Assembly: GCA_904063045.1 (NCBI GenBank)
Contig: CAJFCJ010000061.1
Span: forward strand, 93,385-132,788
Source of the DNA: Dimorphilus gyrociliatus
Lineage: Eukaryota > Animalia > Annelida
DNA: 39,404 bases
Reading direction: 5' to 3'
The position numbers and the translations under genes were made by a program. The notes under the pieces are model-generated. The model was not told the DNA's origin. It made no database searches and saw only the letters and a list, made by a program, of their open reading frames with translations. This document shows, piece after piece, positions 1 through 8,504 of this stretch; the stretch's first letter is position 1, and the number at the start of each line of letters is the position of its first letter.

Positions 1-3000
1 AATTTCATTGCAGACAAACTTATAAGTCATTAATACAATAAGACTATGCGATTGTTTTAATGATAGAACTATCTCTTCAAAATTATCATTTGATCTCTCA
101 TTATAGATTGATCTTTAGAAAAAAATGAATAAAATATAAAAATGGCATTATAATTTTCAAATCAAATATGCATATATACATACACAAGGATTTCTGATTC
201 TTCCAATTCTTCTTGTATCATTGTTGGAGTTACTTTATCAATGGTGTTTGTAGTTTCAAAATCATCTGAACAGTAAAGAATAGCCAGATTATTCCTAATG
301 GATGACTTCATTTTCTCAAGATCTCTTATTGAACTTTGGAGCTGAGAATCAAAGTCTTCACTATTTTCAGGCGGCAACATATCTGGAATGAAAGATATAT
401 AAATCATAATGATTCAATGATCAACTCATCATAATGATAGATTAATTGTTTTACTTTGAATTTGATTTAAGGATAATGTATGGAAATAATTGTAACACTG
501 CATGAATGGTACTTTAAAAGTTAAGGCCCTTTTGATTTTTGAAGACGGTAGCAGAGAGGGATTTGGTTGTCTAAGATAAACACATTCACTGCAAGGTAGG
601 TAGTAGTCATATTTTACCCCAACAAAAGATTCTGCAATTAAGTTTTCAAACACCTCATGAATAACAAATAACATATTTTCTGGTTGTGGTCCTCTGACTT
701 CAACTTGAACAGTTGAATTACTAAATTGAAAAATTATCAGTATTTTAGTGAAAGATTACAAAACTTTTTTGTTACAAACTCCTTTCTTCTAATAAATCCT
801 CTGTGTATATTCTTTTTTAAAAATGATCCATCCTTCCAAAATTTACCTTCATCACTGTATTGTTGGAGTCTCACCTGAGCTCTATTAAAGAGTCCAGATG
901 GAAGATAATAAAAAAAATAAGTCATTTTTGTTTGAAAATCTTGCTCAGTTAGAATATCTCCTTCCCAAATATTCTATTATTAATATTAACATTCAGAATT
1001 AGACAAATAAGAGTATTAAAAAAAATTGCTACTCACTTGAAAATCAATTGATGGAAGAAGACAGGGAATTAAATTTGCTGATTCTGATTTTAGAGGAAAT
1101 GATAGGTCAAATTCCTCAGTTAGTCTTAATAGCCAATTATGTAAATTTGAAGGATAAATGTGCTCTGGCCATACTTTATTGATATTATGATGTAATAATT
1201 TACCATTCTTGAATATGGAAAATTATTTCAGAGTTCAATCAAAGGCTATTAGTTTCACTCAAAAAAATCAGTCAAACTTACTTTTACTGAATTCTCATGA
1301 ACAGAAATCACACAGGACAAAACATCTACAATCCATTGAGGATTAATAATTACTTTATTCTTCAAATATTCATTTTCAAAATATTGTATTGTTCCCAAAT
1401 CATGAAACAAATGAATTACTTGAAGCACCTAAAAAAAAATAAGCAAGTGAAGCTAAAAGAAATAGATGATGGAGAGAGTATCACCTCATCTTTGTTACTA
1501 AGTCCAAACAGTCCTCCTAAATCTATTACTTCTTTTAATGAAAGAAGATTTGTAAAAGTTCTATATCTGTTGTAAAAACAAAACAAAAAACAAATGATAG
1601 AATTAGGTTAAAATTTAAAATTACGAAAAAATAATAAAGTGTGTTTTGATTTACTCAATAATTTTATTTTCAAAGTTCAACCATGTTTTAGGGATCTTTT
1701 CATTCATATATTGTTGTTGTAGAGTAACTTTGACCATGTTATCAACCAAATCATTGATACCCTTTGGTGAGGATATAGAATATGATAGTAAATAATGATA
1801 AATGATGAAATAATTATCCTTACTTGACCTGTCTTTGAAGAAATGTTATGAAAGCCTTTAATTTGAGGATATCTTCTTTGATAATGACGAATAGTTAACT
1901 CAGCTTTGTTAACCTAGAAAAGATGTCGTTGAATCAATTTTAATGGTAAAATGTAAGACTATACAATACTTGATCTATATGAGATCCAACAACAAATATT
2001 GGTGCTTTTGGAGCATGACATTCAATAGAACTCAGCCAAAATTCAAGACCAGCATGTTCATGACCCAATCGTACATTCCATAAGAGAAAATATACTGCTC
2101 TATTTGATAGGAAAAATTGATGAGTATTATAGTAAACAGTTTGACCAGCAAAATCCCAAATTGAATATTCGACTGATTGAACAGACCAGTTTTTTATTGT
2201 AATTCCATCAGTAACTATTGTTTTAATTGAATCTTGATTTTCATCCTCATTTTTCATTGTCATCATCTTTTTTATAAGACTGGTTTTTCCAGCTCCTCCT
2301 AATCCTACTAACATCAATTTACTTCTTCTACATTGAGTTGAACCTTGTGATAATCTTTTCATATATCCCATTGTATCATTTAGACCTTTTTTCACAATTT
2401 CTCTTGGAGGTGTTTTAAGTGCAGGGCAATCATTAATTTTTAGGTTTTTTAAAGGCAAATGACATATTTCAGCACTGATCTCTTCAAGTAAAAGATTAAA
2501 TGATAAATCTAAAGTTTGTAACTTAATTAAATATTTAATGCTATTATCAATAATTTTGAAACTTTGATATTTTAATTCTAAAACAGTTAAGTTTTCACAA
2601 ATTTCATTGTTTGGGCAAAGATTAAAATCTATAGCTGATATTCTGGGTAATTTAAAATATAATCCAGAAGAGAAGTGTTGAAATTCCTCTAATGTCCAAG
2701 CAGAACTATTTTGCAGTGCAGTTTCTTTTATTAAATTTTCTAATATATTTTTATCTAAACCAAAATTTTCCAGGTGTTCCCATTGTTTGTCAGCTTGATG
2801 CCTTACATCATCCGTTAGTATGGATGTATTGATTTTCTTTGGTGTATATCCAAAGGCATTGAATTTAAGTATAATAAGATGGGACAGTTGAAAGATGACT
2901 GAAGGAAATTCTTTAAAAACATTTTGAGATATGATCAACTCTTCTAAATTTATTAATTCACCAAATTCATCAGGAAGGGAATCAATTGGTAGAGAAGATA

Positions 3001-4340
3001 AATTTAAACATTGCAATTGTTTAAAGTCACAAAACATCTGTGGAAATGATTTTAGATCACATTCCGTAATTTGCAAATTGGCAATTGTGGGCGATAATAA
3101 GCTAAATTCTTGGGGAATATTTTCCAAATTAATACCCTGCAACTCTAACTTTACTATTGAGCTGTTAACAAATATTTCTATCTCTTCTTTTCCAACATTT
3201 TCAAACTTTTCATTCAAATGATTATGAAAGTTACAAATTGTAATTCCATTATCTTTGTTCTTGATAAATTTTTCACTTTTTAAGAAATCAATAAAGCATG
3301 TTTTCCATTTTGCAATTAAAGGTTTTGACAATTTGGTTTCATTCATATTATTATTTTCATATTTTAGTCGTAAATATGAAGAATATAATAACAATTGAGC
3401 ATTTTCGCAAGTACAGTATTCCTATTGTGGAGATAAAAGGTTAGCTTTTTCATTAAATTAAACTTTTTTTTATAAAATGAACTCTTACTGCTATTTTATC
3501 AAAGTTTATCCAACTGCAAAGCATTAAAGCTGATATACATTCCAGTTCTGGAATAAATTTTTGTGGTTCATTTGAAGTTTTTATAATGTGAGTAGAATTT
3601 AAATTTCTACAGAAAGCATAGGGTATGAAAGTTTTATTTTCAATTATTTCTGAGAGAAATGTCACAGATGTGTCTCTCAGTGGACACTTCATCAGGAAAC
3701 CAACTTTAACTGGAAAATCTTTCAATGGTTGGTGAAAATATCTTAGAAAATTGGCTTCCAGTTTCCTAAAAAAGTCTGAAGGAAAAAATAAAGGAAACAG
3801 GAAGGTTAACTACAATAATTATCAATTTTTATTATGTGTATACCTCCGTAATAATTTTCATTTCCTTTATGATGTTGAGTAACCAATTCAGAAAATTCTA
3901 TTTTATCCATATTTGGTTTGTGCAACTTCTTAACAACCTCTTGAGGGATTTGTTCAGTATCTAAATATTCCATTAACTCTTCCCAATTAAATTCTCTATT
4001 GTTTGTTTCTTTTGAAAATGAACGGAATAGTTATAATAGAACAAAAAGAAGAAGAAGAAGTGGAAGAGGAGGAAGAGGAGGAAAAAAGAAAAAATTGCAT
4101 CTTACCTATCCTGATATTTTCATAATTCTTTTTTAATAATAGTAAAGTCAATGATTGTAAGTTTATCCATTTATATTTCTGTTTAAGCCAACAGTGACTG
4201 ATTTTCAACATTTCTAATCTATGAGAAATGTCACAAATTGTAGCAATAGTTGGCTTCATACTTTTATCATCTGTTTCTGCCATAATTTGAAATTTTTGTC
4301 CAATTTTAATTTTATCACGTGATAATTTATAATTGTCTTT
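1..4340 (-). CDS. ROCO-family protein, LRR-Roc-COR-TIR-like part (multi-exon, 3' end beyond window edge)
   Basis: Large exon 1970-3420 has LRRs and Roc GTPase motifs: G1 GLGGAGKTS, G2 TDGI, G3 WDFAGQ, G4 GSHID. Downstream exons splice in frame at GT-AG sites: 1913-1824 (YPQIKGFHNISSKTG), 1761-1655 (YMNEKIPKTWL), COR motifs FHDLGTIQYF..KNKVIINPQWIVDV, LTEEFDLSF..LIPCLLP and YLPSGLFNRAQVRL, a CxxC segment, then a TIR-like segment at <1-390. Upstream exons 4340-4106, about 4011-3845 and about 3775-3490 also join in frame. Confidence 0.9.
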
Positions 4341-4503
4341 CTAAAACAGCAAAGAACTTTATGTTAGTTTTTTGAAAAGAATTTTAAGAGAGGAAATTAC
4401 AGTTACTGTAATGAAACTTTGAAAATATGAGTAAAACCTATCAAATTAACACTCCCTCCCCCACTTCTCCAATACCCAAAATAGGATAAAAAAACATACT
4501 TAC

Positions 4504-7390
4504 AGGAGCAAAAGTGAAATCAATATCACTATCCTGAGCCAAATCCTCTCTAGTTTGTATAACAAGTTGATAATTATCTTTTGGAACATTTATACAATCA
4601 GTAACAATGTTGTCAAGATATATTTTCATTTCAATTTCATCATTTTTAAAATGAAGCTGTTTTTTTCCATGATATTTAAATAATAATTGAATTTTTAAAA
4701 TTGATAAATCAGCAAAATACATTTTCCTTTGTATACTTTTGTTTTCATATTTCCAAATTATTTCATATTTATGATTTATAGTATCAAAAAGAAATTGTAA
4801 TTGATTCCTAAACAAAGAAGACAATAAATAATTTTCATGATTTATGACAAAAAGGAAATAGAAATAATAAGGATAAAATCTTACTTTTCAGATCTGAAAA
4901 ATAAAAAAAATATTGATTAGGATAAGAATTTTTTTTAAAAATGAAAAATTCTATAAATTCATTACATTAGTTGAATACTATTTGTTACATTACTTGGCTT
5001 TATCTTCAATGTATAGAAATGTATAGGATCCATTAATGTTTTACAAATGTATGTCTTTACTTGTGGATCTTCATCAAGATCATTACTTAATGTGCTTAAT
5101 GTTAGCATTTCTTCTGGTTTATGCTCTTCAGTAAAGTAAATCTCGTCAGCAGTTGTTGGATTATATTGCTTATGCATTATCCAAATTAAATGGGACCTCA
5201 ATGCATTTTTCTCAGTTAAAGCATCAATGGGTGTGTAAAAGATGTTAAAGTTATCAACTTGAAAGAAGGAAGGAAAGTAAGGATGAAGGGAAGATAGAAA
5301 TTTAAAAATTTATGATAACTAATTGAAAAATACAATAATATACAAACAGAATAATAGATTACTATCATCTTCAAAGTTTGCTTCATTACCCCAAGGTGTT
5401 TCTAGTTGTCTCTTTATAAAAAAATTAAATAGACAAAAGTTCAGATAAAGGAGAATTTTTTCAATGTAATTTTTGTCTGACCTCGTAAAATATTGATGAT
5501 TCATGGAGAGCAAATTCAATAATTACTGCAATTTCAATTAAAAATCCAGCTATTAATGCTGGAGCTTGTTTACATGCAAGTGTAGATGAGATAACTTTTA
5601 TAGTTTTAGAACTGCCCTCTTCCTTCTCTTCCTCCTCTTCATCATCAAATAGAATGCAAGTTTCTACAGGACCTCCTTGAAGAACAACTCTTCCCCTTCT
5701 CAGTTCAATTATAGAACCAAATGGATCTCCTATCTTGTACACCGAAGTAATTAAGTATAATACTAATCTGTGTAATTGATTCATGTATATTGGACTCTCT
5801 GGGTGGTACATCAGAACAGCTGAGACAGCTTCTTTTAAATTCTATAATTTGGAGAGAGAAGTGAGTTTTTTATGTTCACTGTTCTTCAAACTATTGAAAA
5901 CATACCAAAGAACTTTTGTAAGGAGTTTCTGGCTTGGGTAAACTTTGAGGGAAGACACAAGAATTTGGTGTTAAATCTAATACAATTCCCATTTGGCAGA
6001 ATATCATCTTATGAAAGTTAACATCTATTTTTGTCTAATAAAAGAAAAAAGGAGATGAAAATACAGAGTTTCTTCTAATAGGAAATGGTACCAAATGACT
6101 AGGTAATGTGGTCATAAATGCCTTTTCCATATTTCTACAGACTGGAGTGTCCTTAGTCAAGAAGTAGTATTGACCTTTAAGAGAACCTTGACACTGTTCA
6201 GAGGATGTTTGAAGTTGATGGAAAATGCTCATCAACCACTGTCCATTGACAATATAGTATTCCTTGTAGAAAATTGTCTTAATGAGTATAAATGTGCCCT
6301 GTTGATGGTAAATTATGAAAGCTAGATGGTTTAATGCAATTAGTTGTTTATAATTTACAATCTTTTCAATAAAATCCAGAGCTTTAAAGTAAGGAAACCT
6401 ATACATATTTAAAGAAACATCTTCAATGTCGCCATCATCTATTGAAATTTTTTTATATTCATATGTAAAGTTAAGTATTTCTTCACGAATTGATCTTGTA
6501 CCAAGAATTTCGTTGTTTTCTAAATGTTGAAATTATATAATTGATTGTATAAAACAAAACTGGTAGAATTAGATTATAATTACTTTTCAGGAATGAATCG
6601 ACTGGACAATGCTCAATAATTTGTTTAAGTGTTGTAAATCCTTTTCCTATTTTCTCTTCTTGCAACAGTGTTTTGATTTTCTGTTTTAACTTAAAAACTT
6701 CCGCACTTGTGGCCTATTTTGACAAAAGGAATTGCTGTTAATTAATAATGAAGAACGAAAATAGCAACACTATCAATCACCTTTTGGTAGGGAAAACTGG
6801 TAACCAAGACATTATTAGATCCACGAACGTAATCAGACAGTTTCTATTTTTTTTAATACAATGTATTTTATAATTGAAATCTCTTTAAAGAGGATTAATA
6901 TACACCTTTTGTCTATGATCATAGAAATTTAGTTTTGCAGATGTCTTGACTTCAATTAAGGATAAGTTCTCTTGCAGGGCTATATAATTATGCAAATTAA
7001 GTTGATCTTTGAAATTTAATTTTCTCAAATTATTCATTCTATAAACAAAGAAAATTAAAGAAATTAAAAAAAATTGAGTTAGAAGGTCAAGGTTAAGATT
7101 GGATGATGGTTTTGGAGATTTTGAAGTCTTTTTCCCTTTTGGTGGTTTTACCAGCCTATCATAAAACCTTAACCCTAACCTTATATATCGATTACTAGCT
7201 TGGTCAACTCAAACATCCTTTCCTTGTCTTGTGCTAGTGTTTCTTTTACCATTGTTAACACTTGCTCAGGTAGGGAAAGTTCTTTATTCGCATTGTCAGC
7301 AGTGGAACAATGAATTTTATAAGAGCCCTCACTTTCCCCATCTCCAATATAACAGAAATGAATAGAAGGGAAAATCTTAGGATGCAGGAA
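4504..7390 (-). CDS. Degenerate COR-like (possibly pseudo-Roc-COR) coding region, probably the 5' half of the same ROCO gene
   Basis: From about 7006 down, exons chain in frame through short GT-AG introns. YHQQGTFILIK..KEYYIVNGQWLMSIF parallels FHDLGTIQYF..KNKVIINPQWIVDVL, and MIFCQMGIVLDL..CVFPQSLP parallels LTEEFDLSF..LIPCLLP. A phase-0 donor at 4503 (CCT|gtaagt) can join a phase-0 acceptor at 4341 (ttttag|AAAGAC). The link between the 7390-7195 exon and the 7006 exon was not resolved. Confidence 0.65.
4885..4893 (-). other. Candidate 9-nt microexon ATCTGAAAA
   Basis: Flanked on the minus strand by ttttttatttttcag and gtaagat; phase 2 in and phase 2 out, between exons ending at 4966 and starting at 4807. 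Confidence 0.55.
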
Positions 7391-7893
7391 CTTGAAAATT
7401 AAAAAAGTTTACAAATATAAATGGGTATAAATACAATAATGGAAGAACAAAAAAAACAATATTATCCTTATTCTTTGTAATGACCTTTTGACCTTTTAGT
7501 TTCAAAACATAGAATAAAGACAGCTTATTTTGTGTAAAAATAAATCTGTAATACTTTTGTTATACAAAATTGAATAATTTTTTGAAAAATCACCAACTCT
7601 TCATCCATTTTAAAATCTTTATTAAATGGTACAATTACTGAACACCTGTTGAGAGTTATCAATGGTAGAAACTCCTATATTGTTGAAAAATGGATATCAT
7701 AATGAAAAACAGACAAAAATGAAAATTTTTACCTCAACACATTCATAAAAGTGAATACCATTCTCAAAATAATAACGAAAATGATGAGAAGAATTGAATT
7801 CCGTTTTTTTACTTTTAGCATAGTGGATAAAATCAAATCTAGGCCAGTTGTTATCATGAAATACTCCTTTATACATTGATTTAAAGTGGATGA

Positions 7894-8504
7894 NNNNNNN
7901 NNNNNNNNNNNNNNNNNNNNNNNNNNNNNNNNNNNNNNNNNNNNNNNNNNNNNNNNNNNNNNNNNNNNNNNNNNNNNNNNNNNNNNNNNNNNNNNNNNNN
8001 NNNNNNNNNNNNNNNNNNNNNNNNNNNNNNNNNNNNNNNNNNNNNNNNNNNNNNNNNNNNNNNNNNNNNNNNNNNNNNNNNNNNNNNNNNNNNNNNNNNN
8101 NNNNNNNNNNNNNNNNNNNNNNNNNNNNNNNNNNNNNNNNNNNNNNNNNNNNNNNNNNNNNNNNNNNNNNNNNNNNNNNNNNNNNNNNNNNNNNNNNNNN
8201 NNNNNNNNNNNNNNNNNNNNNNNNNNNNNNNNNNNNNNNNNNNNNNNNNNNNNNNNNNNNNNNNNNNNNNNNNNNNNNNNNNNNNNNNNNNNNNNNNNNN
8301 NNNNNNNNNNNNNNNNNNNNNNNNNNNNNNNNNNNNNNNNNNNNNNNNNNNNNNNNNNNNNNNNNNNNNNNNNNNNNNNNNNNNNNNNNNNNNNNNNNNN
8401 NNNNNNNNNNNNNNNNNNNNNNNNNNNNNNNNNNNNNNNNNNNNNNNNNNNNNNNNNNNNNNNNNNNNNNNNNNNNNNNNNNNNNNNNNNNNNNNNNNNN
8501 NNNN
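7894..8504. other. Assembly gap (run of N)
   Basis: 611 consecutive N characters. Confidence 1.

Follow-up and report, generated by a model that had tools for sequence, protein, structure and literature searches.

The stretch analysed here, a 39,404-nt window of the Dimorphilus gyrociliatus assembly (G000:C61:93385-132788, to whose positions all coordinates refer unless another contig is named), is AT-rich (~28% G+C) and carries on its minus strand, across positions 1-7891 and extending on both sides, what is most probably one intact gene for a ROCO-TIR protein of more than 2000 residues, in which a second, diverged COR domain lies upstream of the live one. Within the Roc-COR switch, COR is responsible for dimerisation and for relaying the signal; the switch forms the core of LRRK2, in which disease mutations are concentrated where Roc meets COR and COR meets COR. 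An earlier note, made from the letters of this window alone, had proposed a single ROCO gene with two COR-like modules at this place, and the results below support that proposal in outline while changing several of its details.

The gene was compared with its relatives on other contigs of the same assembly (C5, C13, C40, C57, C63, C138 and C205), with retrieved loci and contigs (L-labels; L038 and L039-L042 come from Logan, L014 and L018 lie on C40, and L016 on C205) and with public proteins, foremost P0001 (CAD5126558.1, DgyrCDS14654), the D. gyrociliatus protein encoded on the window's own contig. Exons were searched singly, and the public proteins were used wherever a contiguous protein was needed. 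The upstream module (6519-5482) is divided below into COR-A' (6519-5906) and COR-B' (5841-5482), and the features of the gene are listed from its 5' side.

7733..7891, minus strand: exon x1, an open frame with a GTAAAA donor, its 5' side running into the N gap at 7894-8504, and perhaps the initial half of a degenerate Roc-like region; homologues at the N-termini of P0003 and P0049 and in exons of L033, L034 and L036.
7558..7674, minus strand: exon x2, matched by tblastn (P0003 residues 24-47 to window 7674-7603) and conserved in C13, C40, C57, C63 and L038.
7209..7390, minus strand: exon a, with a phase-2 donor at 7208 that is the only GT fitting the acceptor before 7038; conserved in C138 (E 1e-11) and C40, and aligning with the 'NLxP...hhFhG' exon of P0003 and L033.
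6906..7038, minus strand: exon b, donor at 6905, with a 'F(K/N)DQ.NLHN' block kept in all paralogs and L038.
6781..6843, minus strand: probable exon b2 (63 nt), taken from the public model P0001, with AG/GT flanks and phase 0; it resembles the corresponding stretch of P0049.
6584..6713, minus strand: exon c, after an AG at 6715-6714, donor at 6583 with a phase-1 end, leading into the COR-A-like domain; kept in C40 and C138.
6359..6519, minus strand: exon d1, where COR-A' begins (helices), with a 'RFPYFKA' block kept at 8 loci and lying within the hhalign COR-A match.
6299..6358, minus strand: GT-AG intron of 60 nt, in frame and stop-free in this copy.
6092..6298, minus strand: exon d2, the core of COR-A', with a 'G..hL.K...hhV.P.W' motif (alignment A1, 10 loci).
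5906..6034, minus strand: exon e, the end of COR-A', kept in C13, C138, C40 and C5.
5482..5841, minus strand: exon f, COR-B' (C-terminal COR half), including a variable acidic loop.
5348..5411, minus strand: exon f2 (64 nt), with AG/GT flanks, restoring the phase between exons f and g; the 'TPWG' block of its peptide is kept in P0002, P0003 and L038.
4966..5257, minus strand: exon g, middle region, with 45-91% amino-acid identity in four paralogs and no Pfam match.
4504..4807, minus strand: exon h, the last of the upstream half, with 61-88% identity in paralogs and present also in L038.
4341..4503, minus strand: GT-AG intron of 163 nt, phase 0 to phase 0, joining the two halves.
4106..4340, minus strand: exon i, containing the internal ATG at 4283.
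3844..3993, minus strand: exon j, middle region; P0001 has its acceptor further upstream, near 4010, and the frame is kept either way.
3489..3775, minus strand: exon k, middle region, placed by exon mapping.
1970..3421, minus strand: exon l (1452 nt), with LRR repeats and the greater part of the live Roc G domain.
1913-1824, 1761-1655 and 1566-1485, minus strand: exons m, n and o, the end of Roc and the start of COR-A, from exon-by-exon mapping of P0001.
1428-1282 and 1207-1037, minus strand: exons p and q, canonical COR-A (Pfam COR-A at 1.1e-9 and 3e-10).
973-780 and 720-455, minus strand: exons r and s, canonical COR-B (Pfam COR-B at 1.5e-6 and 5.7e-12).
382-184 and 112 to past the window edge, minus strand: exons t and u, a first, diverged TIR; the gene runs beyond position 1.

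Between the N gap at 7894 and the window edge, these exons are linked in one frame across short GT-AG introns, and all junctions from 7037 onward combine GT-AG borders with a fitting phase, in keeping with the chain that the earlier note had described from about 7006 down. The 163-nt intron that it had placed between the two halves was likewise recovered: the last codon of exon h is complete at 4504 and is followed by GTAAGT, and exon i opens in frame at 4340, right after an AG. The chain had been thought to begin at about 7006, and this part did not hold, as conserved coding exons lie further 5' (7390-7209, 7674-7558 and 7891-7733). The ATG at 7037 in exon b is internal and not a start codon, and its Met is not kept in C13.

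A repeat of COR motifs in the upstream half, which had been part of the original argument for a second COR, stood in part. The motif 'YHQQGTF' straddles the 60-nt intron (6358-6299), with most of the stretch behind it intronic; this intron holds stop codons in paralogs C13, C138, C5 and others and is spliced out in P0001; the COR-A-like pattern persists once the intron is removed. This intron is stop-free in C40 as well, and its retention would add 20 residues to COR-A' with the frame kept.

The downstream half is, by its domain matches, an ordinary LRR-Roc-COR, and an apparently active one given that the nucleotide-binding motifs of Roc are intact in translation (P-loop GxxxxGKT, DFAGQ and SHID). 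The Roc G domain was matched by Pfam PF08477 at 2.3e-22 on window:1943-3421:- and exon l showed further matches to LRR_14 (1.8e-11) and Ras (2.6e-11). The canonical COR follows directly after Roc (PF16095 on 1258-1428 and 1019-1222, PF25497 on 740-973 and 432-755), and in P0001 the corresponding COR-A and COR-B are contiguous over residues 1643-1940, with Pfam COR-A at 1643-1782. At the 3' side, Pfam TIR profiles found no match on window:165-413:- nor on the homologous C13 pieces. The TIR-like tail of the earlier note was confirmed by way of the homologous stretch in relatives: the stretch corresponding to exons t and u in P0049, P0002 and P0003 aligned by hhalign with the TIR of the family (Prob 97.6%, E 4.6e-12, 99 columns), hmmsearch returned second-domain TIR matches at 2.8e-7 and 3.8e-6, and a Pfam TIR_2 lies further downstream in paralogs C13, C57 and C63 and in L038. 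We also noted a conserved region of ~190 residues after the second TIR in paralogs (L013:1802-2365, minus strand; L038:13742-14305), which has no Pfam match.

The assignment of the upstream module to COR draws on profile comparison, on clusters of the ESM Atlas and on a predicted structure. In an exon-level comparison with hhalign, exon d2 matched the canonical COR-A exon at E 1.9e-4. For the region as a whole, an alignment of the module (slices of public proteins together with paralog exon fragments) was compared with one of 14 natural COR domains, giving a Prob of 87.9% and an E of 3.2e-6 over 122 collinear columns that run from COR-A position 42 to the first COR-B strand, with exon e aligned to the C-terminal 'hlPcLLP' segment of COR-A. 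Reversed profiles reached a Prob of 0.1-0.3%, and among 30 block-shuffled templates the top score was 32, vs. 49 for the comparison itself. A hidden Markov model built from the family's own COR gave weak, collinear second matches in P0001 and P0002, and a BLASTP comparison of the upstream with the downstream COR pieces recovered only the 'P.W' motif (E 5e-4).

Residues 387-690 of P0001 retrieved COR-A/COR-B clusters from the ESM Atlas with a score of 0.95 and 180 shared features; the middle region (residues 695-1105) was matchless, so the COR result is specific to the part queried. Exon f alone, modelled with AlphaFold2 from 17 aligned sequences, gave a predicted local distance difference test score (pLDDT) of 82 and a predicted template modelling score of 0.77; its secondary structure runs strand, helix, four strands, helix. 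Against 48,161 PDB representatives, VIA-align placed two chains of the Chlorobium tepidum Roco at the head of the list, 3dpt_B first (Z 11.2) and 3dpu_B second (Z 10.9), and the model superposed on their C-terminal COR half (residues 792-889) with a root-mean-square deviation (rmsd) of 1.8-1.9 Å over 92 residues and a sequence identity of 10-12%. The match to LRRK2 residues 1686-1809, its COR-B, scored Z 7.6-8.4. For exon f, structure prediction, which the earlier note had named as a way to examine its second COR, came out in favour of the proposal, and we regard the structural match of the exon f model as supportive, though not decisive alone. In this model the Glu/Asp-rich acidic loop of COR-B' (window 5590-5640), which ranges from 0 to ~14 residues among paralogs, is of low confidence.

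The foremost alternative is that the module is not a COR homologue, but an unrelated segment of winged-helix-like type with a common alpha/beta domain (TBP/KA1-like) behind it, whose likeness to COR is due to chance or convergence. We consider this unlikely, while noting a set of results that speaks for it and weighs against a second COR. The Pfam scans took in all 20 open pieces, the COR-like exons of paralogs and the public full-length proteins, and no threshold produced a COR match for the module: none at E <= 1 on the window exon pieces, none at E <= 10 in the paralogs' COR-like exons, and no second stretch of COR-A/COR-B in P0001 at E <= 0.01 or in P0003 at E <= 10. The search with Roc and COR profiles that had been suggested as a check thus found Roc, COR-A and COR-B in the downstream half and no Pfam COR in the upstream module. 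Exon-level hhalign of exon f against the canonical COR-B exon returned nothing. The profile of exon f, run against 1.84 billion proteins, found 11 matches (three from D. gyrociliatus and eight exon-sized Logan open reading frames (ORFs)), a narrow spread with no canonical COR-B among them. The fold of exon f is a common alpha/beta arrangement, with the phosphoglucomutase C-terminal domain at Z 9.9 (1.3 Z below the top) and many unrelated chains at Z 8-10; Foldseek against the PDB gave no match at E <= 1e-3 for exon f, and its top rows were KA1, phosphoglucomutase and START domains. The AlphaFold2 model of COR-A' (d1, the 60-nt intron and d2 in read-through) reached a pLDDT of 49 and was unusable.

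Against this alternative, the hhalign match does not stop at a single segment but extends through COR-A into the first COR-B strand, a Roco COR both ranks first among the 48,161 chains and has the lowest rmsd, and the host protein is itself a ROCO. We read the upstream module as a COR because three independent methods agree, because its COR-A-like part stands directly before its COR-B-like part as in a real COR, and because both parts lie within a ROCO protein. The second COR-like module of the earlier note is in this sense upheld by the hhalign match to COR-A, the COR clusters of the ESM Atlas and the exon f model matching the C. tepidum Roco COR.

That both COR-bearing halves belong to a single gene, as had also been proposed, is indicated by the comparison of the junction between them across the family. 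The GTAAGT donor at 4503, behind exon h (which ends at 4504), is kept in paralogs C13, C138 and C40, while the read-through tail behind the donor is not. On the other side of the intron, the 19 codons of exon i before ATG 4283 are kept as protein in C13, C138, C40 and L038, the ratio of nonsynonymous to synonymous substitution rates (dN/dS) of exon i is 0.12-0.17, and C138 and L038 have a different codon in place of the Met of ATG 4283. The order of upstream module, ~2-3 kb, and then LRR-Roc-COR-A-COR-B is repeated at C13 (four loci), C5, C57, C63 and C138, and is carried in decayed form by C40, with upstream-module identity among paralog loci dropping to 25%. The same layout, N-module followed by LRR-Roc-COR-TIR, occurs on Logan contig L038 (run SRR23372228, 14.9 kb), whose best match in the D. 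gyrociliatus genome is only 55% identical, so that L038 comes from a different genome. L038-L042 are genomic contigs of 29% G+C that carry the same N-module and LRR-Roc-COR-TIR gene at 28-55% protein identity.

Five public gene models (P0001, P0002, P0003, P0049 and P0050) cover both halves, and P0001 uses the junction 4504/4340 (residues 876/877). The D. gyrociliatus annotation was produced with an AUGUSTUS, PASA and EvidenceModeler pipeline (PMC7854359), and given that P0001 is wrong elsewhere at the locus, we gave little weight to the annotation alone.

The locus could instead hold two neighbouring genes kept paired in every copy, one ending shortly after 4504 and an LRR-Roc-COR-TIR gene starting at ATG 4283, which we judge to be very unlikely. 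An ATG is indeed present at 4283, the public model of the locus is chimeric at its 5' end, so that annotation by itself is weak proof, and no RNA evidence was obtained for the junction 4504/4340, with no transcript-derived ORFs returned for exon h, the LRR-Roc exon or P0001 residues 690-1105 as queries. The single-gene reading, for its part, draws on comparisons between loci and on automated annotation with faults elsewhere in the same model, and both ends of the gene are masked by N runs (7894-8504, and left of position 1, where the genome reads N for ~4.6 kb so that the 3' end is out of sight), all of which tells against it. A second gene starting at 4283 would nevertheless have to be squared with the donor kept in three paralogs whose read-through tail is not kept, with protein-level conservation and low dN/dS ahead of its own start codon, with the absence of that ATG from C138 and L038, and with a spacing of just 220 nt between 4504 and 4283, which leaves little space for a 3' untranslated region, a poly(A) site and a promoter.

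It is highly improbable that the upstream half of this single gene is a decaying, translated but functionless remnant of an internal duplication: the half is far more diverged than the canonical one, its COR module has a dN/dS of 0.2-0.3 (0.2-0.29 in exon f) vs. 0.06-0.16 for the canonical COR, or about twice as high, and the family copy on C40 is clearly a pseudogene, yet these ratios are reached at near-saturated dS, the frames are intact, and the module is kept in at least eight paralogs up to 75% different in sequence as well as in another organism. Judged by these substitution ratios, the upstream COR module is under purifying selection.

LRR-Roc-COR-TIR proteins are already known in molluscs and visible in other spiralians, and the gene model CAD5126558.1 is public. 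Lophotrochozoan proteins of this type (Roc-COR-TIR_2 proteins of Batillaria, Candidula and Capitella) share the order LRR, Roc, COR-A, COR-B, TIR with the worm protein, and lophotrochozoan ROCO-TIR matches showed 37-56% identity over LRR-Roc. The Aplysia 'TLR/MyD88-like proteins with ROCO domains' (PMC9334734) are likewise of the LRR-Roc-COR-TIR type, and neither that report nor the Pfam strings of the lophotrochozoan matches show a second COR before the LRR. Our literature search found no paper on a second COR or a dead Roc-COR in a ROCO protein. LRRK2, LRRK1, MFHAS1 and DAPK1 have the Roc-COR tandem in common with the worm protein, MFHAS1 in the same LRR-Roc-COR order and with no kinase, but they carry a single Roc-COR, with kinase or death-domain outputs instead of TIR, and we know of none among the four with a Roc-less or dead second COR. 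The C. tepidum Roco (PDB 3DPT, 3DPU), whose C-terminal COR half is matched by the predicted exon f fold and also provides its main dimer interface (PMC6337361), is a homodimer-forming protein with a single Roc and a single COR, whereas in the worm protein an extra COR would share its chain with a complete Roc-COR.

With the domain order [Roc'?]-COR'-X-LRR-Roc-COR-TIR(-TIR), in which the bracketed Roc' is questionable, the protein may be a cytosolic sensor of the innate-immune type, where the LRR would sense, Roc-COR would act as the GTP-controlled switch and TIR would provide the output. [quoted passage not shown] On these grounds, the extra COR would most likely offer the live COR a partner or decoy within its own chain, through an intramolecular pseudo-dimer or autoinhibition, or else act as a second oligomerisation surface, and in either case it would tune the timing of TIR signalling. 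The pseudokinase-kinase tandem of JAK offers an analogy only, with a degenerate module copy beside a live one as a built-in partner and with unrelated folds. A natural protein with a Roc-less or dead-Roc second COR in one chain would be a system in which to ask whether COR-COR pairs form in cis, and how such pairing controls GTP turnover and output.

A further step, suggested but statistically unsupported, concerns the exons ahead of the extra COR: they would be what is left of a Roc that has lost its P-loop, which would make a dead copy of Roc-COR out of the N-terminal unit. The hhalign alignment of exons 7891-7209 with Roc is collinear from about position 17 to 160 (strand 1 to G4), at non-significant E values of 0.016-0.39, and these exons lack the P-loop and DxxGQ. 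RNI-type LRR-like repeats occur further upstream in more distant paralogs. A half-versus-half hhalign comparison with 3-sequence alignments detected COR-A only (E 0.005), with nothing in favour of an LRR', Roc' or TIR' counterpart. It is possible, but on balance doubtful, that the whole N-terminal half is an ancient LRR-Roc-COR duplicate with a pseudo-GTPase Roc, whose dead Roc-COR would be the cis partner of the live one, in place of the homodimer on which GTP turnover depends in other Roco proteins; the protein would then be a 'GTPase activated by dimerisation' made of one chain, with TIR signalling under its control.

Between the extra COR and the LRR lie ~420 residues (exons g to k, window 3489-5257) that are kept in paralogs and L038; these exons have no Pfam match, and, as given above, P0001 residues 695-1105 found none in the ESM Atlas.

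The gene belongs to a family with at least nine loci in the D. gyrociliatus genome. Its expansion in a very compact genome, together with the TIR ends, points to a spiralian family of innate-immune sensors whose full domain structure is missed by current annotation. At C13:944086-1073999, at least five members lie within ~130 kb, a tandem cluster of ROCO-TIR genes.

At the 5' side of the window gene, P0001 bridges the N run at 7894-8504 and fuses an ORF with a signal peptide and F5/8 type C (discoidin) domains (9432-8536, minus strand) onto the ROCO. We rejected this lectin ORF as part of the ROCO gene: its homologue in C138 lies on the strand opposite to its ROCO neighbour, and the 5' fusion in P0001 therefore looks like an annotation chimera.

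Two further copies are rearranged. At C40:55548-62546 (L014, L018) lies a copy ~90% identical to the window gene; it carries stop codons and has lost an internal stretch with the LRR-Roc exon and most of COR-A, which leaves exon k joined to o to s; as judged from its sequence, with a dN/dS of 0.4-0.8 in several exons, this copy is a recent pseudogene. The second, at C205:57670-59360 (L016), is a fragment adjoining an N stretch, in which upstream exons f and g are joined to the downstream COR exons o-s.

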